Below, one piece after another: positions 1 to 31,609 of a DNA stretch of 64,000 bases. The position numbers and the translations under genes are program-made. The number at the start of each line of letters is the position of its first letter. The stretch's first letter is position 1. The notes under the pieces were generated by a model, which was not told where the DNA came from, did not search any database, and saw only the letters and a program-made list of their open reading frames with translations. The DNA comes from Adineta vaga (taxonomy: Eukaryota; Animalia; Rotifera): NCBI GenBank assembly GCA_021613535.1, contig CP075497.1, positions 7,998,001 to 8,062,000 on the forward strand, read 5' to 3'.

Positions 1-2726
1 AAAGAAGAAAAAAAACCATTATGAAATAGAAGAATTAAACTTTCGCTTCTTACGTTCGAGCATCAATTAAAACAATTAAATTATCTCGAGCAGATACTAA
101 TAAATAATTATCACCTGGCGAATAAGTGACACTATTTAATGGAATATTCTATTCAAATAAAAGATTATTCTTTTTTCATTAAAAACAAAAAAAAAGAAAT
201 TTCTTCTTACTTGTAATTCACCAAAATCTAAATTTGAACCTAATGTCCAACTATCAGCAAATACTAAAAAGAATAAAGAAACGTCATTTCTATTTTTGAA
301 ACACTCAAATCGAATGTCATACTTTGAGATGTACTTGTTTCAGTCGGTAATCCATGCCATACTTTAATAGAACCAATACTATCAACCGATGCTAAACGTG
401 TACCATCTGGATTGAATGATAGACTGCTAATATATCCTAAGTGATCAGCCATTGTTCGAATTACCTAGAAGAAAAATGTATCTAATTGAGAATAAAGAAG
501 AAAAAAAACTAAATAAATTTACGTGTCCATGTTTTTTGTCAATGTTCCATATACGAATCAATTTATCATAACCAGCAGTGACAATAATATTTCCAACAAA
601 TGGATGAAAACGAACACAATAAACATAACTTGGATGTGCTAATGATCTCCATGGTTTTCGTTCAGTTTGTTCGAAATTCCAAATTCTAAAAGAAATCAAA
701 TAACACTGAGATCTCACTGATTATTTGATTGAAATTGAATCTTACTTGACAGATGAATCAGCTGATGCTGATGCTAAATAACAATCCGATCGACTCCAAT
801 CTAAATCATAAATCATTTGTAAATGTCCAGTAAATACAGCGACACGTTGTCCACGTGGAATCTAAATAAGATGATTTTGTACAAGAGAGAGTAACACGTT
901 GAAGAAATAAATATACTTCAAAAACAGAAATTAAATTATTCTGTTGTAATTTATTCACTTCTGCACAAGCCAAAAAATATCCATTGTGTGAAAAACGTAT
1001 TGCTGAACAACCACGATCACTTGTATTTAATGAAAGTAAAGATTCAGTAGGAATTTTACATTTTGAATTTGGTAATTTTTGCCATCGTGGTGGTAATTGT
1101 GCAACACGTTGCAATGGACCCATCATTTCATTATTTAAATCCATTTGTTGAGTTTCTGTGAGATGATTTGTTGAACCATCTGGATTATGTCTATTTGAAG
1201 AGAAAAGAGACAAGAATAGTTCTCTTCAATGAAATCAGTTTTATTTTACTCTGCAAGGTCACGTTTTATTTGTTGATATTCATTTCGCATTTGTTCGATA
1301 CCACCATCTAATGCTGATCGAATACCTGGATTAAAATGATTTGGAATATTCAATGGTTTGATCGTCACATAAAGTGTTGAAGGATATTTTATACGAGACA
1401 TATGATTATACCATAGGATAACCTTAAGAAAATGAAAAATCAATCAAAATAGATTTCTTTCTGTTATGATTTATTTACATCAGGTGTTAATGCAGAACCA
1501 CGAAGTTGTTCAATTGGTTGCCAAAGTTGTAAACGAATCATTCGTTCAGTATTAAGTGTATTTCGTGCACCAATTACCTAATTGATAAGTATATTTCATT
1601 ACGGAGAACAATGTACTAAGTTAATTTACTTTTAAAAATGCCCATGCAATTGGAAATGTATTTGATAAATCATTAATATTCTGTTGATTAGTAACAAATT
1701 CTAAAATCTACAAAAATAATTCATCATTTCAATTGACTAGATTTCAATTTGAATATATACTTCAAAGAAAATACAAATATTCTGTTGTTGAGCTACAGTA
1801 AAATGTGTATATTCTTCATTGATAATTAACATTTGTTCCCATGATGGAATAGTTGAACTAATTGAAAATAATTTATTTGAAAATCTTCAAAAAATATAGT
1901 TTACCGATTGGCATGAAAATCATAAGGTTGTGTAGATATAGCTGGAATATGATCTGTTGTTGCTTGTTCATTTTGAATATGATAACGAAGGACTAAACGA
2001 TTTCTATATGAAATGAGAAAACAAAAGATTGTTAATTGTAAATATTCTTAGTATTAATCGTTCAACATACGGATCAGTTTTTCGTACATATGACCTTGTA
2101 CTAAGATCAACTAAATGAACGCGTATAAATGGATGTCGAAGTCGTAAATCTGTTCTTAAACGATCTGTTCGATGAATAACAATTCCTAAGATTTTATCTC
2201 GTCCATGATCAATCGTTGTTTCTGTTTCGGAATGTGCACCTTTCGATGTTGTACGTCGTTGTCGACGACGACTTCCACTTCGTTTTCTTTCTGTCATTTC
2301 AATATCTTCGCCTTCACGTGCTTTGAATGTTTTCTTTTTTCGTGTTGGTTTCGTTTCATGTTCTATCGTAACACTTGTTGAATTATCCAACGGAGGTAAA
2401 TCTGGACTTTTTGGTGATAATCTACGTTGACGATGAGACGTTGGTGGTCGTAAATGACCATCTGGAACTGAAAAATCATGCAATAGAATTCACAATTAAA
2501 TCATCTTAGGAAAATAACCTTCACGTTTCGTTTCATCACCACTTGTTGTTCCTGAATTCGTTCGAATTTGACGACGAGCACGTCGTGCTCGTGACATTGT
2601 TTCATCTTTAATCAATCGTTCGTTATGACTATGATATTCAATTCCACTATCATGCTAGATAAAAATAAATAGATTATTTTCGATTTTGTCTTCATTTTCC
2701 TAACATACCGAGTCAGATTTGATCAT
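1..2726 (-). CDS. AHI1: Jouberin/AHI1 (ciliary transition-zone WD40 protein), multi-exon, 3' end runs off the window
   Basis: Exon ORFs give ILGIVIHRTDRLRTDLRLRHPFIRVHLVD (AHI1 C2-like region), then WD40 repeats: GCSAIRFSHNGYFLACA, HPSYVYCVRFHP...VTAGYDKLIRIW, HLGYISSLSFNPDGTRLASVDSIGSIKVW. Start ATG at 2726 lies in an 18-nt first exon (MIKSDS|gtatg). Confidence 0.85.
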
Positions 2727-5473: not shown

Positions 5474-7104
5474 TTATTTTGATACATAACGATTATAAAT
5501 ATCTCGTGTTAGTGCATCTCCTTGTGATGAATGTGTTGCTGATGTTAATTGAAGAGGTTTCAATCGTTGAGTTGCAAGATATTTTTCACGATTTTTCGCT
5601 GATAAACCTGATAATTTCTTGTATTCATTCCAAAGTTCATTGACAACTTCACTTGTTAATAGATCACTAATATTTTCTGATATTAATCTTAGAATTAAAA
5701 CTCCATCAGCTGATAAATAATCAAAAATAAATCGTTTAACTAACATTTGCCGTTTAAATCGTTCTGTTTTTGAATATAAATTTAAATAATTCGCAACATA
5801 AGCATAATTAAAGTGACTAAAATTACTTCGAATAATTGTTAATAGAAGACTATTGAAATTTATAATCGTTAAAAAAACTAACCAAAACCAAATAATCGTA
5901 AAAATCTTCTCATTAAATACATTCATTGGTAATAAACATTGAACCTATGAAAACAAAAAATGATCATCATTTTCTCTTTTTACAAAACAAACGATTTTAC
6001 TGTATAAAGTGTTGGTTGACCAATTTTAATAATATTGAAATCACAATAGACACTTAATGGAAATATTCGTGTACCAATCACGTATTCTCCTCGCCGAAAA
6101 TTATCAATCACTTCTAATCCATAGAGAGAAGAATTTTTTGTTAATAACGTATTTAAACAGAATAATTGTAATGAGGAATTAATGAGAAAAAGTATTTTAA
6201 CAATAACAAATAGATTAGCAAGATAATATCCATGAACGGCATTACCCGTTGCAAAAAGAAATGGCATACAAAATATATGAAAAAATTTCATTACAGACGA
6301 AGGATTTGCTGTTGTATTCGATGAATTTGATGCACCACCAGGTTCAGTGGTAGTCATTCGATTGAAATCATGTTGTTTTGAACGAGCTAAAAGATTTAAC
6401 ATTGTTGTTATATGTTGAACTTTATATCGACTTGTTCGATAATCGAATTTCGGTGATAAACAATGTTGTATATTGATTCCACAACGAGAACTAAAACCAC
6501 TCCAAATCAAACGTGGAATGAGAAATAAAAGTGATTGTAGAGCAAGTAAAATTGGAATCCATTGATAATAATATATTGAACGACGACGACGTATATGTGC
6601 ATCATTTAATGTTGGAATTGATTCATTCATTGACATATAATAAGTATTTGTTACATAACAATAATGTCGAGTATATGAAACAAAATTACCTAGAAAGATA
6701 ATAATAATACATTGGAATAGAATGTCATGTTAGTTCAATCTATTTGTTTAATGAGAATACGATTTATCAATATTTTATGTGTTATCGTCTATTCTTTGTT
6801 TCAAAATGATCATTTGTAAATCTTTCAATGAATACAAAAGGATATTTGATTTGATTACATGAACGTTTTTATTTGATTAAATTCGGAATGAAAAATGATA
6901 ATCTTTACCTGTGAATTCACCTGGTGTCCAACATATGATTAAATCTGATATGAATAAACGTGAAGCGAGAATAGCAGAAAATATAAGTAATACAAAAACT
7001 GTATGACGATGATTGAGTCGATTACATGCATCATCATCAGGACAACCAAAAAAGGACACACGAAGATGTTTTAGTTCAGTTAAACGATGAACGACTTCAG
7101 TCAT
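5474..7104 (-). CDS. Innexin (invertebrate gap-junction protein)
   Basis: DDDACNRLNHRHT, ICWTPGEFT..YC, the YYQWIP signature, FPLSVYCDF, QCLLPMNVFNEKIF..IWFW and YLSADGVLILRLI. Confidence 0.95.
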
Positions 7105-24610: not shown

Positions 24611-26308
24611 ATGCCGGCAAGACCAACTTCAGGAAAGGCAGGTGGCAAAAAAGATAGTGCTGGAGGTAAAAAAGGCAAAAATAAAGGTGCTAAAGTCGGT
24701 GTTGTTGATCCTCATCAAGAACAAATCGATGGTTTAATACGTGAACGTGAGGAAATTCGTTCAAAATTAAATCTCGTCTGTACAAAAATCATGGAAAATG
24801 TCAATCTCGATGATTATAAAAATGATATTGATATAAGTAAACAACAACCATCGGATATCCCTATTGATATAATCTATTCAATGATTGATCAAATTTGTTA
24901 TTATCGTGTCGCATTTTTAAATCTCTTCCAAGAAACTGATGATAGTGAAAAGATATCTGTTCAGAAAAAAATCACTCAATTATCGCTTGATGATCCTGAT
25001 CTCTTTCGTAAACAATTAACAGCTTATCAGCGATTAACATTTGTCGCACGAGAACGAGATGTTTGGAAAGAAAATGCTTATTTATTACAAGACATGTATA
25101 AAACTATAGGTATGTTAATCAAATAATTTATAAAAAAAAAGAAAAACATTTATCAGGATTCTTATATCATAGAATAATCGAGAATTAATTGATTTCTATT
25201 TCTTGCAGTTGATCAAGTTGAAATGGAAACATTTCAAAAACCGAGCGTTAAAAGTGAAGAAATACTCAAGAGTTCTCGATTGAATTTAGAAGATATTTGT
25301 TTTATATTTTCTCTACCACGTATTCTATCAAGTAAGTATTCGTGTACAATCAAAAACGAAATCGAACTGTTTCGTTTATTAAGTTAATGATGCTCAAAAA
25401 CTACGTACGAAAAAACCATCAAATGACCTACATGATTCAAATACATCTGCCGATCATATCCAACAACAAGAGAATTCTGATGATCCATCATCAAAATCTC
25501 AATTATCCAATCAAAATGAACGTCGAAACCATTCGTCATCGGGTATAAAACGAAGTGTATCATTTGCTGATGATGTTCCTTTACCAAAAGAAAATGATCA
25601 ACTAGATTCTCAACAAAATATTGAACTACCGTCAAATGAACAAATCATCGAAGATAATCTTTCACCAACATCATTGGTAAATTCTTCTACTTTAATTCCT
25701 ATGAATCATCATCGAATTGACGAAAAATTTAATGATAGTGATTATCATTCATTATCTTCTTCATCATTTCATCCGCGCCATCACCAACAACTTGATACAT
25801 CATCACAATCAAAATATAATTTACCATCGAAATATCATCTTCCACCAGCAAGAGATGTTTTAGTGAAAAAAATGGATCCAAATTTACGTATGTTAATTAT
25901 TAAAGAACTTAGTAAAAGTGGTCATGTAGAAAGACCACTTTCACGAATGAGTATGTTTTTATAAAGGCATGTTATTTCATTTTATTTTATTTCGTGTTGC
26001 CTCTTATGTTAGGTTCAACTCGTGGTTTACATAATACACATAGCTTTAATTCTCGTCATCAACAAATCACACATAGTTCATCACCAGAATGGGTTGAATT
26101 AGCACGTTTGGTTGGAATTGATGAGCCCGAAATTGAACATTGGCTATCACAAAATCTTCAATACCCAGCGGGACGAGTTATATCATCCTGGTGCAACTGT
26201 GAATCGAATCAACCAACTGTTGCTGATTTACATTCTCTCGTTACTTCAAATGAATTAAATCGACATGATCTTGGACGCTATATTGAAACAATGTATATTA
26301 TTGAATAA
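24611..26308 (+). CDS. Uncharacterised protein with basic N-terminus, helical domain and C-terminal death domain (4 exons)
   Basis: Exons join by GT-AG introns. The last exon WVELARLVGIDEPEIEHW..PAGRVISSW..PTVADLHSLV..LNRHDLGRYI has a death-domain pattern. Confidence 0.7.
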
Positions 26309-26382
26309 CAAACATTTATAATAATATTAATAATAATAATAACAACAACAAAATTATTTATATTTTTCATGACTAAAGCTGT

Positions 26383-28976
26383 TTATGTAAAGACATTTGT
26401 AAAAGATTCATCATTGAAATGAATAGAAAATTTTTTACTATCATCCATGTAAACTGTTGGATCAGAATGATGACGTCGTTGAGATAAAAATTGACGATTT
26501 TTATCCAGAAATATGAACCACATATGAGTAAGAATACTAGTCGTAAGTACTTGAATAATCACATAAACTAAATGAAAAAGACTAGATAAACAAAAAGGAT
26601 AAGAAGTGTAAATATACTAGTTATTATTATTGCACATGTGGATCGAGTTTGTCCATAGAGATCTACACAAGGTACGAGATCACCTAAACCTATCAGATGA
26701 TTTGTTGTAATAGCAAAATAAGTTAATTCAATTAAAGACCATTGTGGAACATATATATTATGTATAATCAATGTTGGAATTATTATAAAGAAGAAAGTAA
26801 CTAGAAATGTGATGAACAGAGTTGAAAGAAGAAAACTACGAGATTTTGTTGAATAATATGTAATATAACGATTGAGAGCAATTTGGGAAACAGCTTCATA
26901 GAGAATTGGAATTAATCGACGATGTACAATTTGTTGAAGAAATAAAGCGAAAATTAAACCAACTGCAGTATAAAGAATACAAAGAGCTTTTCCATAGGGT
27001 GTTATTAAATTTGTAGTGCCAAAACCTAAGAAATACAATATATGGTCAATGAAGAATTCTACAGATCGAATTATTCAAAAGAGTAGCATCTGTTTTCTTT
27101 CACTAAATGTGAATTTTTTTTCTCAAAGTAAATAACTGTACTTAATAACAGTTTTTTCTTCTTTCTTCTTTTCTCTGTATTATTACAAATAATCAATTTG
27201 ATGATAACATTATTTTTCACGCCTTCTCATTATCATGCTATTTGAAATTGTGAGAATCGAACCATCTGCGATCTGGCGTGATCCATCGTATCTATTGTAT
27301 AAAACAGTGATTTAAACATTAATCTGTATGCTTATTATTTAGCTTTAACATAGTCCCTTTGATATGAAGTCTGTGTCGATCATTGCCATCGCTCTTTTTG
27401 CTCTTGTTGCTTTATGTTCAAGCGCTCCTCTTGCTCAACAACAAGCAGAAGATCAAGCTCGTATTGATATCTACAATGATTTCTTGTCTAATCTTTTCTC
27501 GGGCCTTGTTTCAACAACATTCGGAACAGTCTCAAACTTCCTTAATCAACTCATCGCTGATAATCCATTACAAGTTGGTAAACGTGATGTTGATGGCGAT
27601 TTAGCTGCTCGTATTAGTGCTTTATCATTTCTTTATGATAACATTCTCGCTGAATTCTTCAGTGGTATTGTTACCAACACATTCACCACCGCCACCAATG
27701 CTCTTAACAACTTGATCCAAACTAACCCATTAAATCTTGGCAAACGTGAGGTTGAAGGTGACTTAGCTGCTCGTATTAGTGCTTTATCATTTCTTTATGA
27801 TAACATTCTCGCTGAATTCTTCAGTGGTATTGTTACCAACACATTCACCACCGCCACCAATGCTCTTAACAACTTGATCCAAACTAACCCATTAAATCTT
27901 GGCAAACGTGAGGTTGAAGGTGACTTAGCTGCTCGTATTAGTGCTTTATCATTTCTTTATGATAACATTCTCGCTGAATTCTTCAGCGGTATTGTTACCA
28001 ATACATTCACAACCGCCACCAATGCTCTTAACAACTTGATCCAAACTAACCCATTAAATCTTGGCAAACGTGCTGAACCTATCAACATTAGCATTTTTCA
28101 ATTTCTTTATGACAATGTTGTTGCTGACTTATTTGGTGGTCTTGCTTCAAATACTGCTAACTATCTTCAAAACACACTTAACAATCTTCTTAACAAACCA
28201 TTTGCCAACATTGGTAAACGATCAGTTGAAATTCAACAAGCTCAAACACTTATTGCTCAAACAGTTTCAACACTCATCGCAACATTCAAGACATTCGCTC
28301 AACAAGCTGTTGCTTCATTAAATGATCGACAAAAATTCTCTGAACTTGTCAAGGAAAACATTGCTTTTATCAAAACTACTGTTGCTGCTTTAGCTCAACA
28401 ATTATCTCAACTTATTCCATCAGCAATTGCAACCGAAATCAGCGAAGTTTTAGCTATGCTTCAATCAGTTCTCGTCTTCTGGACAAGTGGTCTTGCTGGT
28501 TCATTAGGTCCAGTTCTTGGTGCTTTTCGTCCTTAAAAAGGTTCAATTTTCTTCTAATATGTGACAGCTAATCATTTCATTTCAAATAAATTTTCAAATT
28601 ATATTCAGAGATTTTGTTTCTTACCAACAGTAGTCAAAAGAGATGTGACAAACAATAAACCTTGTCCATATGTCCATTTAGTAATATTTGTTTTTGAAGA
28701 AGATGAATGCCATAAACCAGTATGAGATTTATCCAAGAAATAATCCACATATGAATATAAATCATGCTCTAAGAAAGAAAGAATATGACTATTCCTTATC
28801 GAAATCATGAGTTTACCTTTCAAACATTGACTATTTCGATTTATAAATTGTTTAATTTGATTACTAACACGTATATGTCGTTTTCTCTCTTCGATAGCAT
28901 TTAATTCATAAAATATCAAAGCACCAAATAGTAAAAAGAGAAAATAACCAAGAAGAAGAGAGGACAATCTTGGCAT
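26383..28976 (-). CDS. Divergent two-pore-domain K+ channel (K2P) paralogue hosting a nested gene
   Basis: TM1 plus cap; P1 WTYGQGLLFVTSLLTTVG|FG is split by intron 28624-27026; TPYGKALCILYTAVG; P2 WSLIELTYFAITTNHLIGLGDLVP; stop at 26383-26385. Confidence 0.8.
27298..27304 (+). promoter_or_regulatory. TATA box of the nested peptide-precursor gene
   Basis: TATAAAA about 60 bp upstream of the ATG at 27364. AATAAA at 28585-28590 lies about 50 nt after the stop. Confidence 0.5.
27364..28536 (+). CDS. Secreted repetitive prepropeptide (five GKR-terminated amphipathic peptides plus a C-terminal helical domain), intronless
   Basis: 390-aa ORF with signal peptide MKSVSIIAIALFALVALCSS, five Gly-Lys-Arg sites and acidic spacers ending in Arg. 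Codon usage (TTC, AAC, ACC, GCT, CTT) is visibly shifted from neighbouring genes. Confidence 0.9.
   Translation: MKSVSIIAIALFALVALCSSAPLAQQQAEDQARIDIYNDFLSNLFSGLVSTTFGTVSNFLNQLIADNPLQVGKRDVDGDLAARISALSFLYDNILAEFFSGIVTNTFTTATNALNNLIQTNPLNLGKREVEGDLAARISALSFLYDNILAEFFSGIVTNTFTTATNALNNLIQTNPLNLGKREVEGDLAARISALSFLYDNILAEFFSGIVTNTFTTATNALNNLIQTNPLNLGKRAEPINISIFQFLYDNVVADLFGGLASNTANYLQNTLNNLLNKPFANIGKRSVEIQQAQTLIAQTVSTLIATFKTFAQQAVASLNDRQKFSELVKENIAFIKTTVAALAQQLSQLIPSAIATEISEVLAMLQSVLVFWTSGLAGSLGPVLGAFRP
27586..28071 (+). repeat. Three tandem 162-bp (54-codon) coding repeats
   Basis: Units 27586-27747, 27748-27909 and 27910-28071 are near-identical, flanked by two diverged units. Confidence 0.97.
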
Positions 28977-29807
28977 ATAAGTAGAATCGATCAGAGACAA
29001 ATCTACAAAACAAAGATTCCAATAGATATCTTTTTACATATTTTACATTTTTCTATATCATTGAAAATGTCTGTTGAGATGCATTCTGTATTTACTTTAT
29101 TAACTTTAATATAAGTACAAAAATTGCATATCTATAGTATAGGCAAGATCTTCAATTATCTAGTTGTTCCTTTCGGTGCAGTGTTGAGTTTTCGTATCAC
29201 TTCACATAACAATGAAAACTAATTCTATAGAAGAATGAATAGGAGAGATATTTTTGTATACCAGCTTATGGTAGAATATTCTCATATACAATCAGATTAC
29301 CTCAGATAACAACTATGAGAACGATACCAAGATGTAGTACTGAGAAAAAAATACATAATAGAGATAAGATGGACTTGCTATATTTTTCATATTCTAACTA
29401 TGACTGGCTACTTAAAAGTGTAGTTTTGCTCATGCATGAACGCAACAAAAAATAATCTTATATGATACTTTCATTCAGAAGATCCCGCTATATATATATA
29501 TATATATATATACAGAATACAGATGAATTTCGTATATTATTATCAACAAAAAGAAAAAGAAAAAGAAAAGACAAATAAGATGAGCTTGATTATTGAAAAA
29601 AAATGTCCATCCTCTTTAAAATATCATTCTATTTATAAGTCATCAAAGCACCAATCAACGAGTAAAATAAAATAAACATTGTAAAAAATAAGAAGCGTTA
29701 ATCATACAAAAAAGAGTATATATGTCATTCAAGATATGTTACAAGATTCATTAGCACCATTGCGCATTTTACTATACTTAATCTCCTTATTCTTTTTTCT
29801 TTTTCAT

Positions 29808-31102
29808 CTAATTGGAATTAAATTCAGGAGTAATATTAGGCTCATTTTTTTCATTTGTTTGTCGACGATATGGATGATTGGATGAAGCATTATGTATACC
29901 ATACGAATGTGATGATGATGAACGTGATAACCATAATAAACCAGATGTTTCATTTGTAGAAATACGTTCATTTTCGTGTTCAACTTCTTTTTCGCTGAGA
30001 AAATATTGAATTAAATGAAGTTCAGGCATTTGAGAAACCATGGCTACAAGTAACATCATTATTGTTACTCCGATCAAGAGATAAACTGAAAAATCAAAAG
30101 CAATTGATAATTAAGTAGAAAAAACGAATATTGAATGTTTACCTGTTAAACAAACTTTATAGAAAAGTCGATTGCGTTGTGTTGGTGAATCGCCGGCGAC
30201 AAGATCTCCAAGACCGATAGTTGTTAAGGAAATAAAACAGAAGTAGAAGGCATCAATAAATGACCAATTATCTTCGAGAAATGTAAATATAATAGAGGGA
30301 ATAATAAATAAGAATATCAATGAAAATAACAAGACTAGAGATAAATGAATAAAACGAATTTTAGATTCAGATCTTCGATCAGACGAAAGTTTACGACGAA
30401 ACCATAAATATGTATCATTAAGTAGGATGAGAAGTTTACGAACAATAACTGAAAGTAATAGTAATGTCATTGGAACACCAAATATTGCATATATAATGCA
30501 AATGATTCGGCCAGTATCTAAATTTAACGATTAAGATTTGATTAAGATTTGAATAGAAAAAAGACAAGAACGAAATACCTGACAATGGACTCACATGTCC
30601 ATATCTAAATAAAGGAAATAATTAGAGAAGAAAAGAAATCATTATTCGTACCCAATTGTAGTTACAACAGTAACCGCAAAGAAGAATGATTGAGCAAATG
30701 ACCAATTATCAACTCTATAAAGAAAATCAATTAATGTCACGTCTAAAATCTCCTAGTTATTCTATTTTCCATTAGAATCTTCGTTTGTTTAAAATTCTTA
30801 CGTAGTAAAATTGGTCCGCGCATCAACTCCATGTTTATTTGCATCAAGTAAAGCAACAATAAACGATTCAAAATCATTTTCTAGAGAAAATAAGTTATTA
30901 AAAATCAATTCTATTGACTCAAACCTTGTACACATGGATATTTGTCAAGAAAATCCTTTCTTGTTTTGAACATTTCATTGATAATACTTTGTTCTGCTGG
31001 TCGTTCAATGGATGAAAATAATTGAGCACCAAGGAACAAATAAATGAGAAAAATGAATGTGAAAAGGAATACATTCAATTTCGTTGTATATCGATTCAAC
31101 AT
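29808..31102 (-). CDS. Two-pore-domain K+ channel, TWIK (KCNK1/6)-like
   Basis: [53 protein letters not shown], and WSFIDAFYFCFISLTTIGLGDLVAG (GLG in P2, as in TWIK channels). Confidence 0.92.
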
Positions 31103-31264
31103 GTTTAAAGTTTTGTTTACAAAGACAAATCTGGAAAAAGGAAAATGGATGTGCATTTTCGATCTTTTATTTCTTCTTCTTATTTTTTGTTTCTTTATGA
31201 TGTTTCAAATGATTTCAACGAACAAATAATAAACAAAACACAAGGAAAAAAAGAATTTTATTGA

Positions 31265-31609
31265 TTATTGTTCGCGCATATCACGTAAACGACGTACAGC
31301 CGAACGAACAGCAGCAGCAGTTGATGTTGAATAAACGTATGCACCACCAGCGACTGTCTTTTGACATGAACGGCATTTCCAAATACCAACACATGAACGT
31401 TTCATATTATCTTTGCCACAAAATGAACATGTGTATTTTGAATGTTGAGTTACTTCCATTTTTTTAACCATTTTACGTAATGATGCACCATATCTAATCA
31501 ACAGAAAATAAATTCAAATAGTAATAGGAAAAAAGATTCCAATTTTCCTTTTTATTTACCGGGTACCATATTTACCAACGATGCCGACTTTTTTGGTTCG
31601 CTTGGCCAT
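31265..31609 (-). CDS. RPL37A: 60S ribosomal protein L37a (eL43), 2 exons
   Basis: [17 protein letters not shown]|[42 protein letters not shown]. Confidence 0.98.

Follow-up and report, generated by a model that had tools for sequence, protein, structure and literature searches.

The window, meaning the whole stretch of DNA analysed here, is 64,000 nucleotides of the bdelloid rotifer Adineta vaga (contig CP075497.1, positions 7,998,001 to 8,062,000, forward strand). We are concerned with one gene in it, at 27364-28536, that encodes a prepropeptide. Its layout, that of a multi-copy amidated precursor, is of a known kind; the peptides and the C-terminal tail that it encodes are new. The gene is made up as follows.

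27364-28536, plus strand: coding sequence of the peptide precursor, 390 amino acids (aa) and a stop codon, intronless (open reading frame, collinear RNA contigs, homologues to E 1e-223)
27364-27423, plus strand: signal peptide, aa 1-20 (MK, a hydrophobic core and C-S-S, then A-P; read from the sequence)
27424-27462, plus strand: pro-piece, aa 21-33, acidic and Gln-rich, with a conserved terminal Arg
27463-27576, plus strand: peptide type A, 38 aa, a single long helix in the AlphaFold2 (AF2) model
27577-27585, plus strand: G-K-R site 1, invariant in alignment A1
27586-27612, plus strand: acidic spacer 1, 9 aa, with a terminal Arg
27613-27738, plus strand: peptide type B, copy 1, 42 aa
27739-27747, plus strand: G-K-R site 2
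27748-27774, plus strand: acidic spacer 2
27775-27900, plus strand: peptide type B, copy 2, 42 aa, with only synonymous differences from the other copies
27901-27909, plus strand: G-K-R site 3
27910-27936, plus strand: acidic spacer 3
27937-28062, plus strand: peptide type B, copy 3, 42 aa
28063-28071, plus strand: G-K-R site 4
28072-28212, plus strand: peptide type C, 47 aa, without an upstream Arg
28213-28221, plus strand: G-K-R site 5
28222-28533, plus strand: C-terminal tail, 104 aa, a three-helix bundle in the AF2 model followed by a conserved Gly/Leu/Pro-rich end

The window is about 30% G+C, so a 1.2-kb open reading frame (ORF) is by itself improbable by chance; the homologues, with E values to about 1e-223, and the transcription of the gene place this ORF far beyond chance. 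The signal peptide, which was judged by eye, has a 15-residue hydrophobic core after MK and is kept in nearly all of the full-length homologues. The repeated part of the gene is recognized by Tandem Repeats Finder as a 162-bp unit present 3.2 times, with 96% matches, at 27561-28072. An earlier note, written from the letters of this DNA, had described the same precursor architecture, and the 390-aa translation agrees with it residue for residue. Its statement that the 42-mer lacks Cys, Lys and Arg holds on re-reading, and the hydrophobic positions that it laid out along the 42-mer are correct.

Gly followed by Lys-Arg is the signal for the prohormone convertase, the carboxypeptidase and the amidating enzyme of the regulated secretory pathway. 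In the alignment of the 12 homologues that have five units, GKR is invariant at all five sites. Across 64 family proteins every Lys-Arg pair is preceded by Gly (216 of 216), and the unit region contains almost no dibasic pair other than GKR. The number of units ranges from two to five among the homologues and changes by whole units, and one distant homologue terminates with ...F-G-K-stop. An Arg is found shortly upstream of the core motif in 48 of the 67 aligned units; because it follows acidic residues, it is a plausible monobasic cleavage site.

From these patterns we consider it very likely that the precursor is processed into amidated peptides of 38 to 47 residues. The signal peptide would be removed first, after which a subtilisin-like convertase would cut behind each Lys-Arg, a carboxypeptidase would trim the K-R and peptidylglycine alpha-amidating monooxygenase would convert the exposed Gly to a C-terminal amide. 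The conserved Arg a few residues ahead of F-L-Y-D-N is probably a second, monobasic cut that would remove the acidic spacer. Each precursor, about 40 kDa when intact, is predicted to yield a 38-mer, three identical 42-mers and a 47-mer, with monoisotopic masses in the amidated form of 4188.14, 4587.39 and 5182.68 Da, respectively; forms still carrying the spacer would have masses of 5499.82 and 5527.85 Da.

Selection has acted unevenly on the parts of the precursor. The ratio of nonsynonymous to synonymous substitution rates (dN/dS), computed between A. vaga and Adineta ricciae, rises from 0.16 in the peptides through 0.37 in the tail to 0.48 in the spacers; among the parts, type A has 0.19 and type C the lowest value (0.087), while the pro-piece evolves fast (about 1.3 on 12 codons). 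Three synonymous changes and no amino acid changes separate the 42-mers of A. vaga, and the type A, B and C peptides are each kept across genera. The peptide value of 0.16 argues against a defence peptide caught in an arms race, and a role as a receptor ligand stays open. The pattern of a hypervariable mature peptide beside a conserved prepro region was also considered and set aside, the mature peptides being the most conserved part.

The chemistry of the peptides is unusual. Among 189 distinct predicted family peptides, the median length is 42 aa, 85% are without Lys or Arg, most have two or three Asp/Glu residues and none has Cys. Their mean GRAVY (grand average of hydropathy) is 0.52, 182 of the 189 have Ile, Val or Leu as the residue due for amidation, and the maximal 19-residue hydropathy stays below 1.2, so they are not transmembrane-like. 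These statistics bear out the view of the earlier note: their length, hydrophobicity and shortage of basic residues set the peptides apart from typical neuropeptides and from cationic antimicrobial peptides. The conserved positions combine the polar Y-D-N, N-T and N-P-L-G with a hydrophobic stripe. The amphipathicity of the units is moderate. Their hydrophobic moment has its maximum, 0.30-0.34, at 90-95 degrees, which corresponds to a period of about 3.8-4.0 residues, and 0.3-1.3% of shuffles do as well; at exactly 100 degrees the moment falls short of significance. The claim of an amphipathic helix in the 42-mer thus holds to a moderate degree.

In the AF2 model of the whole precursor, each unit is one long isolated helix that is broken at N-P-L...GKR and the spacer. 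The units have predicted local distance difference test (pLDDT) values of 25-35 and do not pack against each other; pLDDT for the whole precursor is 42. AF2 of the tail alone, with 37 tails, gives a pLDDT of 72 and helices at 2-31, 36-62 and 68-92. Foldseek against PDB, the Atlas shape search and VIA wide found only generic three-helix bundles for the tail fold, with Z scores up to 11.4, which is below the meaningful level for helical bundles. The three-helix tail would also be released; its task may be to hold the greasy units in solution or to sort them, and Rotaria manages without it, as described below.

How widely the family occurs was addressed with two kinds of searches. A word-indexed search found 49 relatives; the named ones belong to Adineta ricciae and three Rotaria species, and the remainder are JGI and ENA contigs, many of them about 1 kb and transcript-shaped. 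Of the named homologues, those of A. ricciae match best. An exhaustive HMMER profile search of 1.84 billion representatives returned only 20 proteins. It adds Didymodactylos (P0050) and a distant group with E values of about 1e-12 (P0059 and P0060), 1e-6 (P0063), 2e-5 (P0064) and 8e-4 (P0065); a weak match to a frog VWFD protein was taken as spurious. The homology search that had been recommended to define the taxonomic range therefore gives Adineta, Rotaria, Didymodactylos, environmental contigs and the distant group, and a further search with an alignment of the distant homologues found nothing new.

The distant proteins have the same architecture, i.e., a signal peptide and units with D-F-L-x-x-N-x-x-N-P...G-K-R, and three of the five (P0059, P0060 and P0064) have a further helical stretch past the last unit. 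Their coding G+C is 0.36-0.59, with a G+C content at third codon positions (GC3) of 0.85 in contig L003 and 0.39 in L001, and contig L009 has introns inside the units. An RBR ligase that neighbours a distant homologue has its only named match in A. ricciae, at 28% identity. The spread in G+C and the introns in one of the contigs show that several eukaryotic lineages are involved, and the family reaches beyond the bdelloids into other eukaryotes. About 1.3 kb downstream of the distant homologue in L001 there is an ORF (5807-6046, plus strand) that ends in ...ITSGLAG and resembles the W-T-S-G-L-A-G motif conserved in the bdelloid tail; possibly, a tail-like piece is encoded there by an exon or gene of its own.

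The Rotaria genes have two type-A and two type-B units and end directly after the last GKR, without the tail. R. sordida has a second, tail-bearing copy downstream (L004 7081-7570, plus strand), which is a frame-shifted pseudogene with a remnant of unit A, a unit C that has S-K-R in place of G-K-R, and a remnant of the tail. A related degenerate paralogue, P0055, has lost every GKR.

The limits of the transcript were placed with four public RNA assemblies aligned to 25500-30500; the runs had been selected because they hold the precursor gene. That these assemblies represent RNA follows from spliced joints in the neighbouring genes. The features that flank the coding sequence are listed here.

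27298-27304, plus strand: TATA box TATAAAA (read from the sequence), 30 bp upstream of the cDNA 5' end
27328-27363, plus strand: 5' untranslated region, with the transcription start at about 27328 (start of the run X8 contig)
28585-28590, plus strand: AATAAA polyadenylation signal, with adjoining RNA contig ends at 28581 and 28603

Ahead of position 27328, where the run X8 contig begins, there are some loose adapter letters with GGG at their end; we take them to be a template-switch cDNA oligonucleotide. The RNA contigs from the four assemblies have no splice inside the precursor gene, so the contig ends indicate an unspliced mRNA of about 27328-28603. An environmental transcript-sized contig (L007) begins no more than about 13 nt from the equivalent of the transcription start and has its 3' end 16 nt past an AATAAA. 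Transcription had been named beforehand as something whose absence would count against the idea, and the gene is transcribed. The TATA box and the lack of introns, both of which had been read from the DNA, agree with the cDNA 5' end and with the collinear RNA contigs.

In run X1 the contigs of the precursor gene have a word depth of 1024-1610 and those of its neighbours one of 9-22; in run X6 the figures are 186 and 22-37. These values hint at strong expression of the precursor, contig depth being a poor measure of expression in runs that were chosen for the gene. The biased codon usage that had also been cited is present but mild: the precursor has an effective number of codons (ENC) of 33.8 and a GC3 of 0.27, as compared with 34-39.5 and 0.07-0.21 in five neighbouring protein-coding ORFs, and the short RPL37A ORF has an ENC of 30.7. 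One high-depth contig of run X1 covers 28046-28954, that is, the 3' part of the peptide gene and beyond, past its poly(A) signal into an exon of a two-pore-domain (K2P) potassium channel gene. The same contig crosses a 48-nt K2P intron in spliced form, and it could be an antisense overlap, an unspliced K2P transcript or an assembly chimera.

The peptide gene lies antisense inside an intron of this K2P gene, as the following features indicate.

27026-28624, minus strand: host intron of the K2P channel gene, 1599 nt, containing the whole peptide gene (RNA joint 27023>28623, cut +2, run X6)
26618-27025, minus strand: K2P exon downstream of the host intron, with the second pore motif GLGD
28625-28768, minus strand: K2P exon upstream of the host intron, ending in TTVG

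On the minus strand the host intron reads GTAAGA...TCTTAG. It interrupts the codons for the first selectivity filter, at TTVG|FG, and is spanned by a spliced RNA contig; the junction, whose reading frame was checked by translating the joined exons, restores the filter motif TTVGFG. The nesting and the flanking genes are common to A. ricciae (L005/L006), Rotaria sordida (L004) and an environmental bdelloid contig (L008).

Downstream are a second, tandem K2P paralogue (30111-31156, minus strand) and a ribosomal protein L37a gene (31265-31501, minus strand), in an order that is common to A. ricciae (L005). The upstream neighbour, at 25994-26308 (plus strand; 1707-2069, plus strand, in L004), occupies a syntenic position in Adineta and Rotaria. 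Its C-terminal part carries the conserved block ...EWVELARL.GIDE.EI.HWLSQNLQYPAGRVIS.WCN..., and in Rotaria it shows a faint Death-domain match.

The public annotation of this locus is a chimera. The NCBI entry I4U23_029767 (P0005, 570 aa, Adineta vaga) has 100% identity to units 2-5 and the tail, with the matching part at 27613-28536 (plus strand), and its N-terminal portion of about 171 aa is a separate, unrelated upstream ORF at 24611-25126 (plus strand). This model is contradicted by the cDNA 5' end at 27328. Since it hides the signal peptide and the first unit, screens based on proteomes would miss the precursor.

Comparisons with described families have given little. Pfam, searched with the whole protein at E up to 10 and with the 67 separate units at E up to 1, produced only sub-threshold chance matches, and no CRF/DH44, PDF or other hormone model was among them. 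Nor did a described neuropeptide or lipoprotein family, which would have spoken against novelty, rise above threshold in Pfam. The PDB sequences gave a single chance match to the unit profile (E 7), an ESM Atlas feature search gave only a rotifer cluster with a score of 0.77, and the family is undescribed in the literature searched, which included three sequence motifs, rotifer neuropeptides, bdelloid amidated or antimicrobial peptides and proteins secreted by A. vaga. The statement that no named family is recognizable therefore stands for Pfam, the PDB sequences, the profile search and this literature. A preprint (10.1101/2024.07.20.604414) used arthropod-based models to find about 20 conventional families of rotifer neuropeptides; it also reports a separate PDF for rotifers and predicts amidated peptides in Adineta ricciae. 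A published remark is that very few peptide precursors have been described from bdelloids.

Several known systems resemble the precursor in part. FMRFamide-type precursors also have a signal peptide, tandem units with Gly-dibasic sites and acidic spacers, their copy number also varies by species, and their mature peptides are likewise more conserved than the spacers. However, their peptides are typically soluble and 4-20 residues long, whereas the rotifer ones are hydrophobic, helical, 38-47 residues long and without basic residues; the rotifer precursor also differs in its conserved folded 104-aa tail, and no sequence relation was found. CRH/DH44/egg-laying-hormone peptides are closer in form, being helical, amidated at the C-terminus and about 36-46 residues long, but they occur as one copy per precursor and have many charged residues. 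They were considered for their length, amidation and a faint C-terminal likeness and were rejected because there was no model match and because they are single-copy and charged. PDF/cerebrin (17-20 aa) was also rejected, there being no Pfam match and the precursor peptides being 38-47 aa.

Frog skin precursors (magainin, PGLa) and those of spider venoms (latarcins, cupiennin-type) likewise carry several helical peptides separated by anionic spacers. They are cut after an Arg that follows acidic residues and at dibasic sites, their peptides are frequently amidated, and the products are secreted in bulk by exocrine cells. Frog and spider peptides are cationic and hypervariable, whereas the rotifer peptides are acidic or neutral and strongly conserved, and there is no homology; with 85% of the 189 peptides lacking K/R, the cationic host-defence class (magainin, dermaseptin, latarcin) was rejected. 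Rep1 of Ustilago maydis and Ece1 of Candida albicans (candidalysin) are secreted polyproteins that are cut at Lys-Arg into amphipathic peptides. Those peptides have roughly 30-50 residues and act physically at surfaces or membranes. They are fungal Kex2 substrates without a Gly amidation signal and show no sequence relation to the rotifer precursor; since the profile search gave only rotifer-like matches, the distant eukaryote group and the weak frog match, this class was also dropped. The likeness to Rep1, Ece1 and the phenol-soluble modulins that the earlier note had pointed out does not go beyond analogy; no homology was found. Dermcidin, an amphipathic helix of about 47 residues, is net acidic and bulk-secreted like the predicted rotifer peptides, but it is single-copy, non-amidated and mammalian, and no sequence similarity was found.

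What the peptides do is less clear than how they would be made. We lean, tentatively and at somewhat below even odds, toward bulk-secreted peptides with a physical mode of action. Secretory cells would release them in quantity, and they would bind membranes or lipids, or assemble at surfaces, under a conserved structural constraint and would not act as a classical neurotransmitter-type signal. All of the predicted peptides would be helical, hydrophobic (GRAVY about 0.5), essentially without basic residues, net acidic and closed by an aliphatic amide end. We prefer this explanation because of their length, their hydrophobicity, the lack of basic residues, the apparent abundance of the transcript and a folded tail that is possibly solubilising, and also because the amphipathic moment is significant at 90-95 degrees and no hormone family matches. 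Several points weigh against it. The cleavage, the amidation and the peptides themselves are predictions from sequence; the mature peptide is the most constrained part, including the invariant polar D, N, N-T and N-P, and such conservation is typical of receptor ligands and the reverse of that in frog and spider defence peptides. In addition, the amphipathicity is only moderate (moment 0.3), contig depth in runs chosen for containing the gene is no valid measure of expression, and in an animal this small a neuropeptide mRNA can be abundant too.

The main rival is a lineage-specific neuropeptide or hormone precursor with the same processing, from which neurons or endocrine cells would release the amidated 38-47-mers to specific receptors. 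The classical multi-copy layout of signal peptide, repeated units, GKR and acidic spacers is in its favour, as are the strong constraint on the mature peptides, with their invariant polar residues and conserved C-terminal N-P-L-x-x-amide, and the conservation of each of the three peptide types across genera; the rotifer neuropeptide repertoire is also poorly known. However, the peptides are long, hydrophobic and without basic residues, and we know of no neuropeptides of this kind that occur at three to five copies per precursor. The lack of a match to CRF/DH44, PDF or other hormone models, the conserved folded tail and, as weak evidence, a transcript abundance that looks high also count against a hormone, and we regard it as possible but rather unlikely. 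A host-defence role, in which the peptides would be antimicrobial, antifungal or cytolytic, like those of frog skin or spider venom, and would evolve in conflict with pathogens, is a good deal less probable. Defence peptides of this kind typically come from multi-copy precursors that have acidic spacers and are cut at an Arg behind acidic residues, and they are typically amidated; the units are also helical and amphipathic. Moreover, bdelloids are attacked by specialised fungal pathogens (PMC11258130). Yet the rotifer peptides are net acidic and have no cationic face, they are strongly conserved between Adineta and Rotaria at a dN/dS that gives no sign of diversifying selection, and the portions searched of the text of a paper on the bdelloid antifungal response do not mention such peptides. 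We judge it very improbable that the protein stays uncut after secretion as a chain of helical repeats, similar to an apolipoprotein or LEA protein, with GKR as a mere conserved linker. The whole chain is indeed predicted to be helical by AF2, the hydrophobic periodicity recalls repeat helices that bind lipid surfaces, and the tail is conserved. Against this are the 216 G-K-R sites out of 216 with no other dibasic site in the unit region, the changes in copy number by whole units, the homologue that ends in G-K-stop, the loss of the tail in Rotaria, the absence of packing between units in AF2 models with pLDDT of 25-35 and the lack of any lipoprotein or LEA family above chance. An exchangeable apolipoprotein/LEA repeat was rejected as well, since only one unit matches APOC4 (E 0.14) and the GKR pattern speaks for cleavage.

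Of the two leading explanations, bulk secretion with physical action is therefore the one that we favour over a neuropeptide or hormone. More speculatively, and with a good deal of doubt, the bulk-secreted peptides might represent a new class of animal secreted effector, consisting of lipid- or surface-binding or self-assembling amidated helices with a chaperone-like tail and belonging to a larger bdelloid set. Such effectors would be used at the body surface or at membranes, e.g., in drying, adhesion or antifungal defence.

In conclusion, the locus encodes an undescribed and well-conserved peptide family of unusual chemistry, its predicted members being hydrophobic, acidic, amidated and about 42 residues long. 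The peptide biology of rotifers is almost unexplored, and the precursor supplies masses and coordinates that can serve as concrete targets. If the peptides prove to be hormones, they would form an unusually long multi-copy ligand family; if they act physically on membranes or surfaces, they would represent a novel kind of secretion in animals that survive desiccation and resist fungi.

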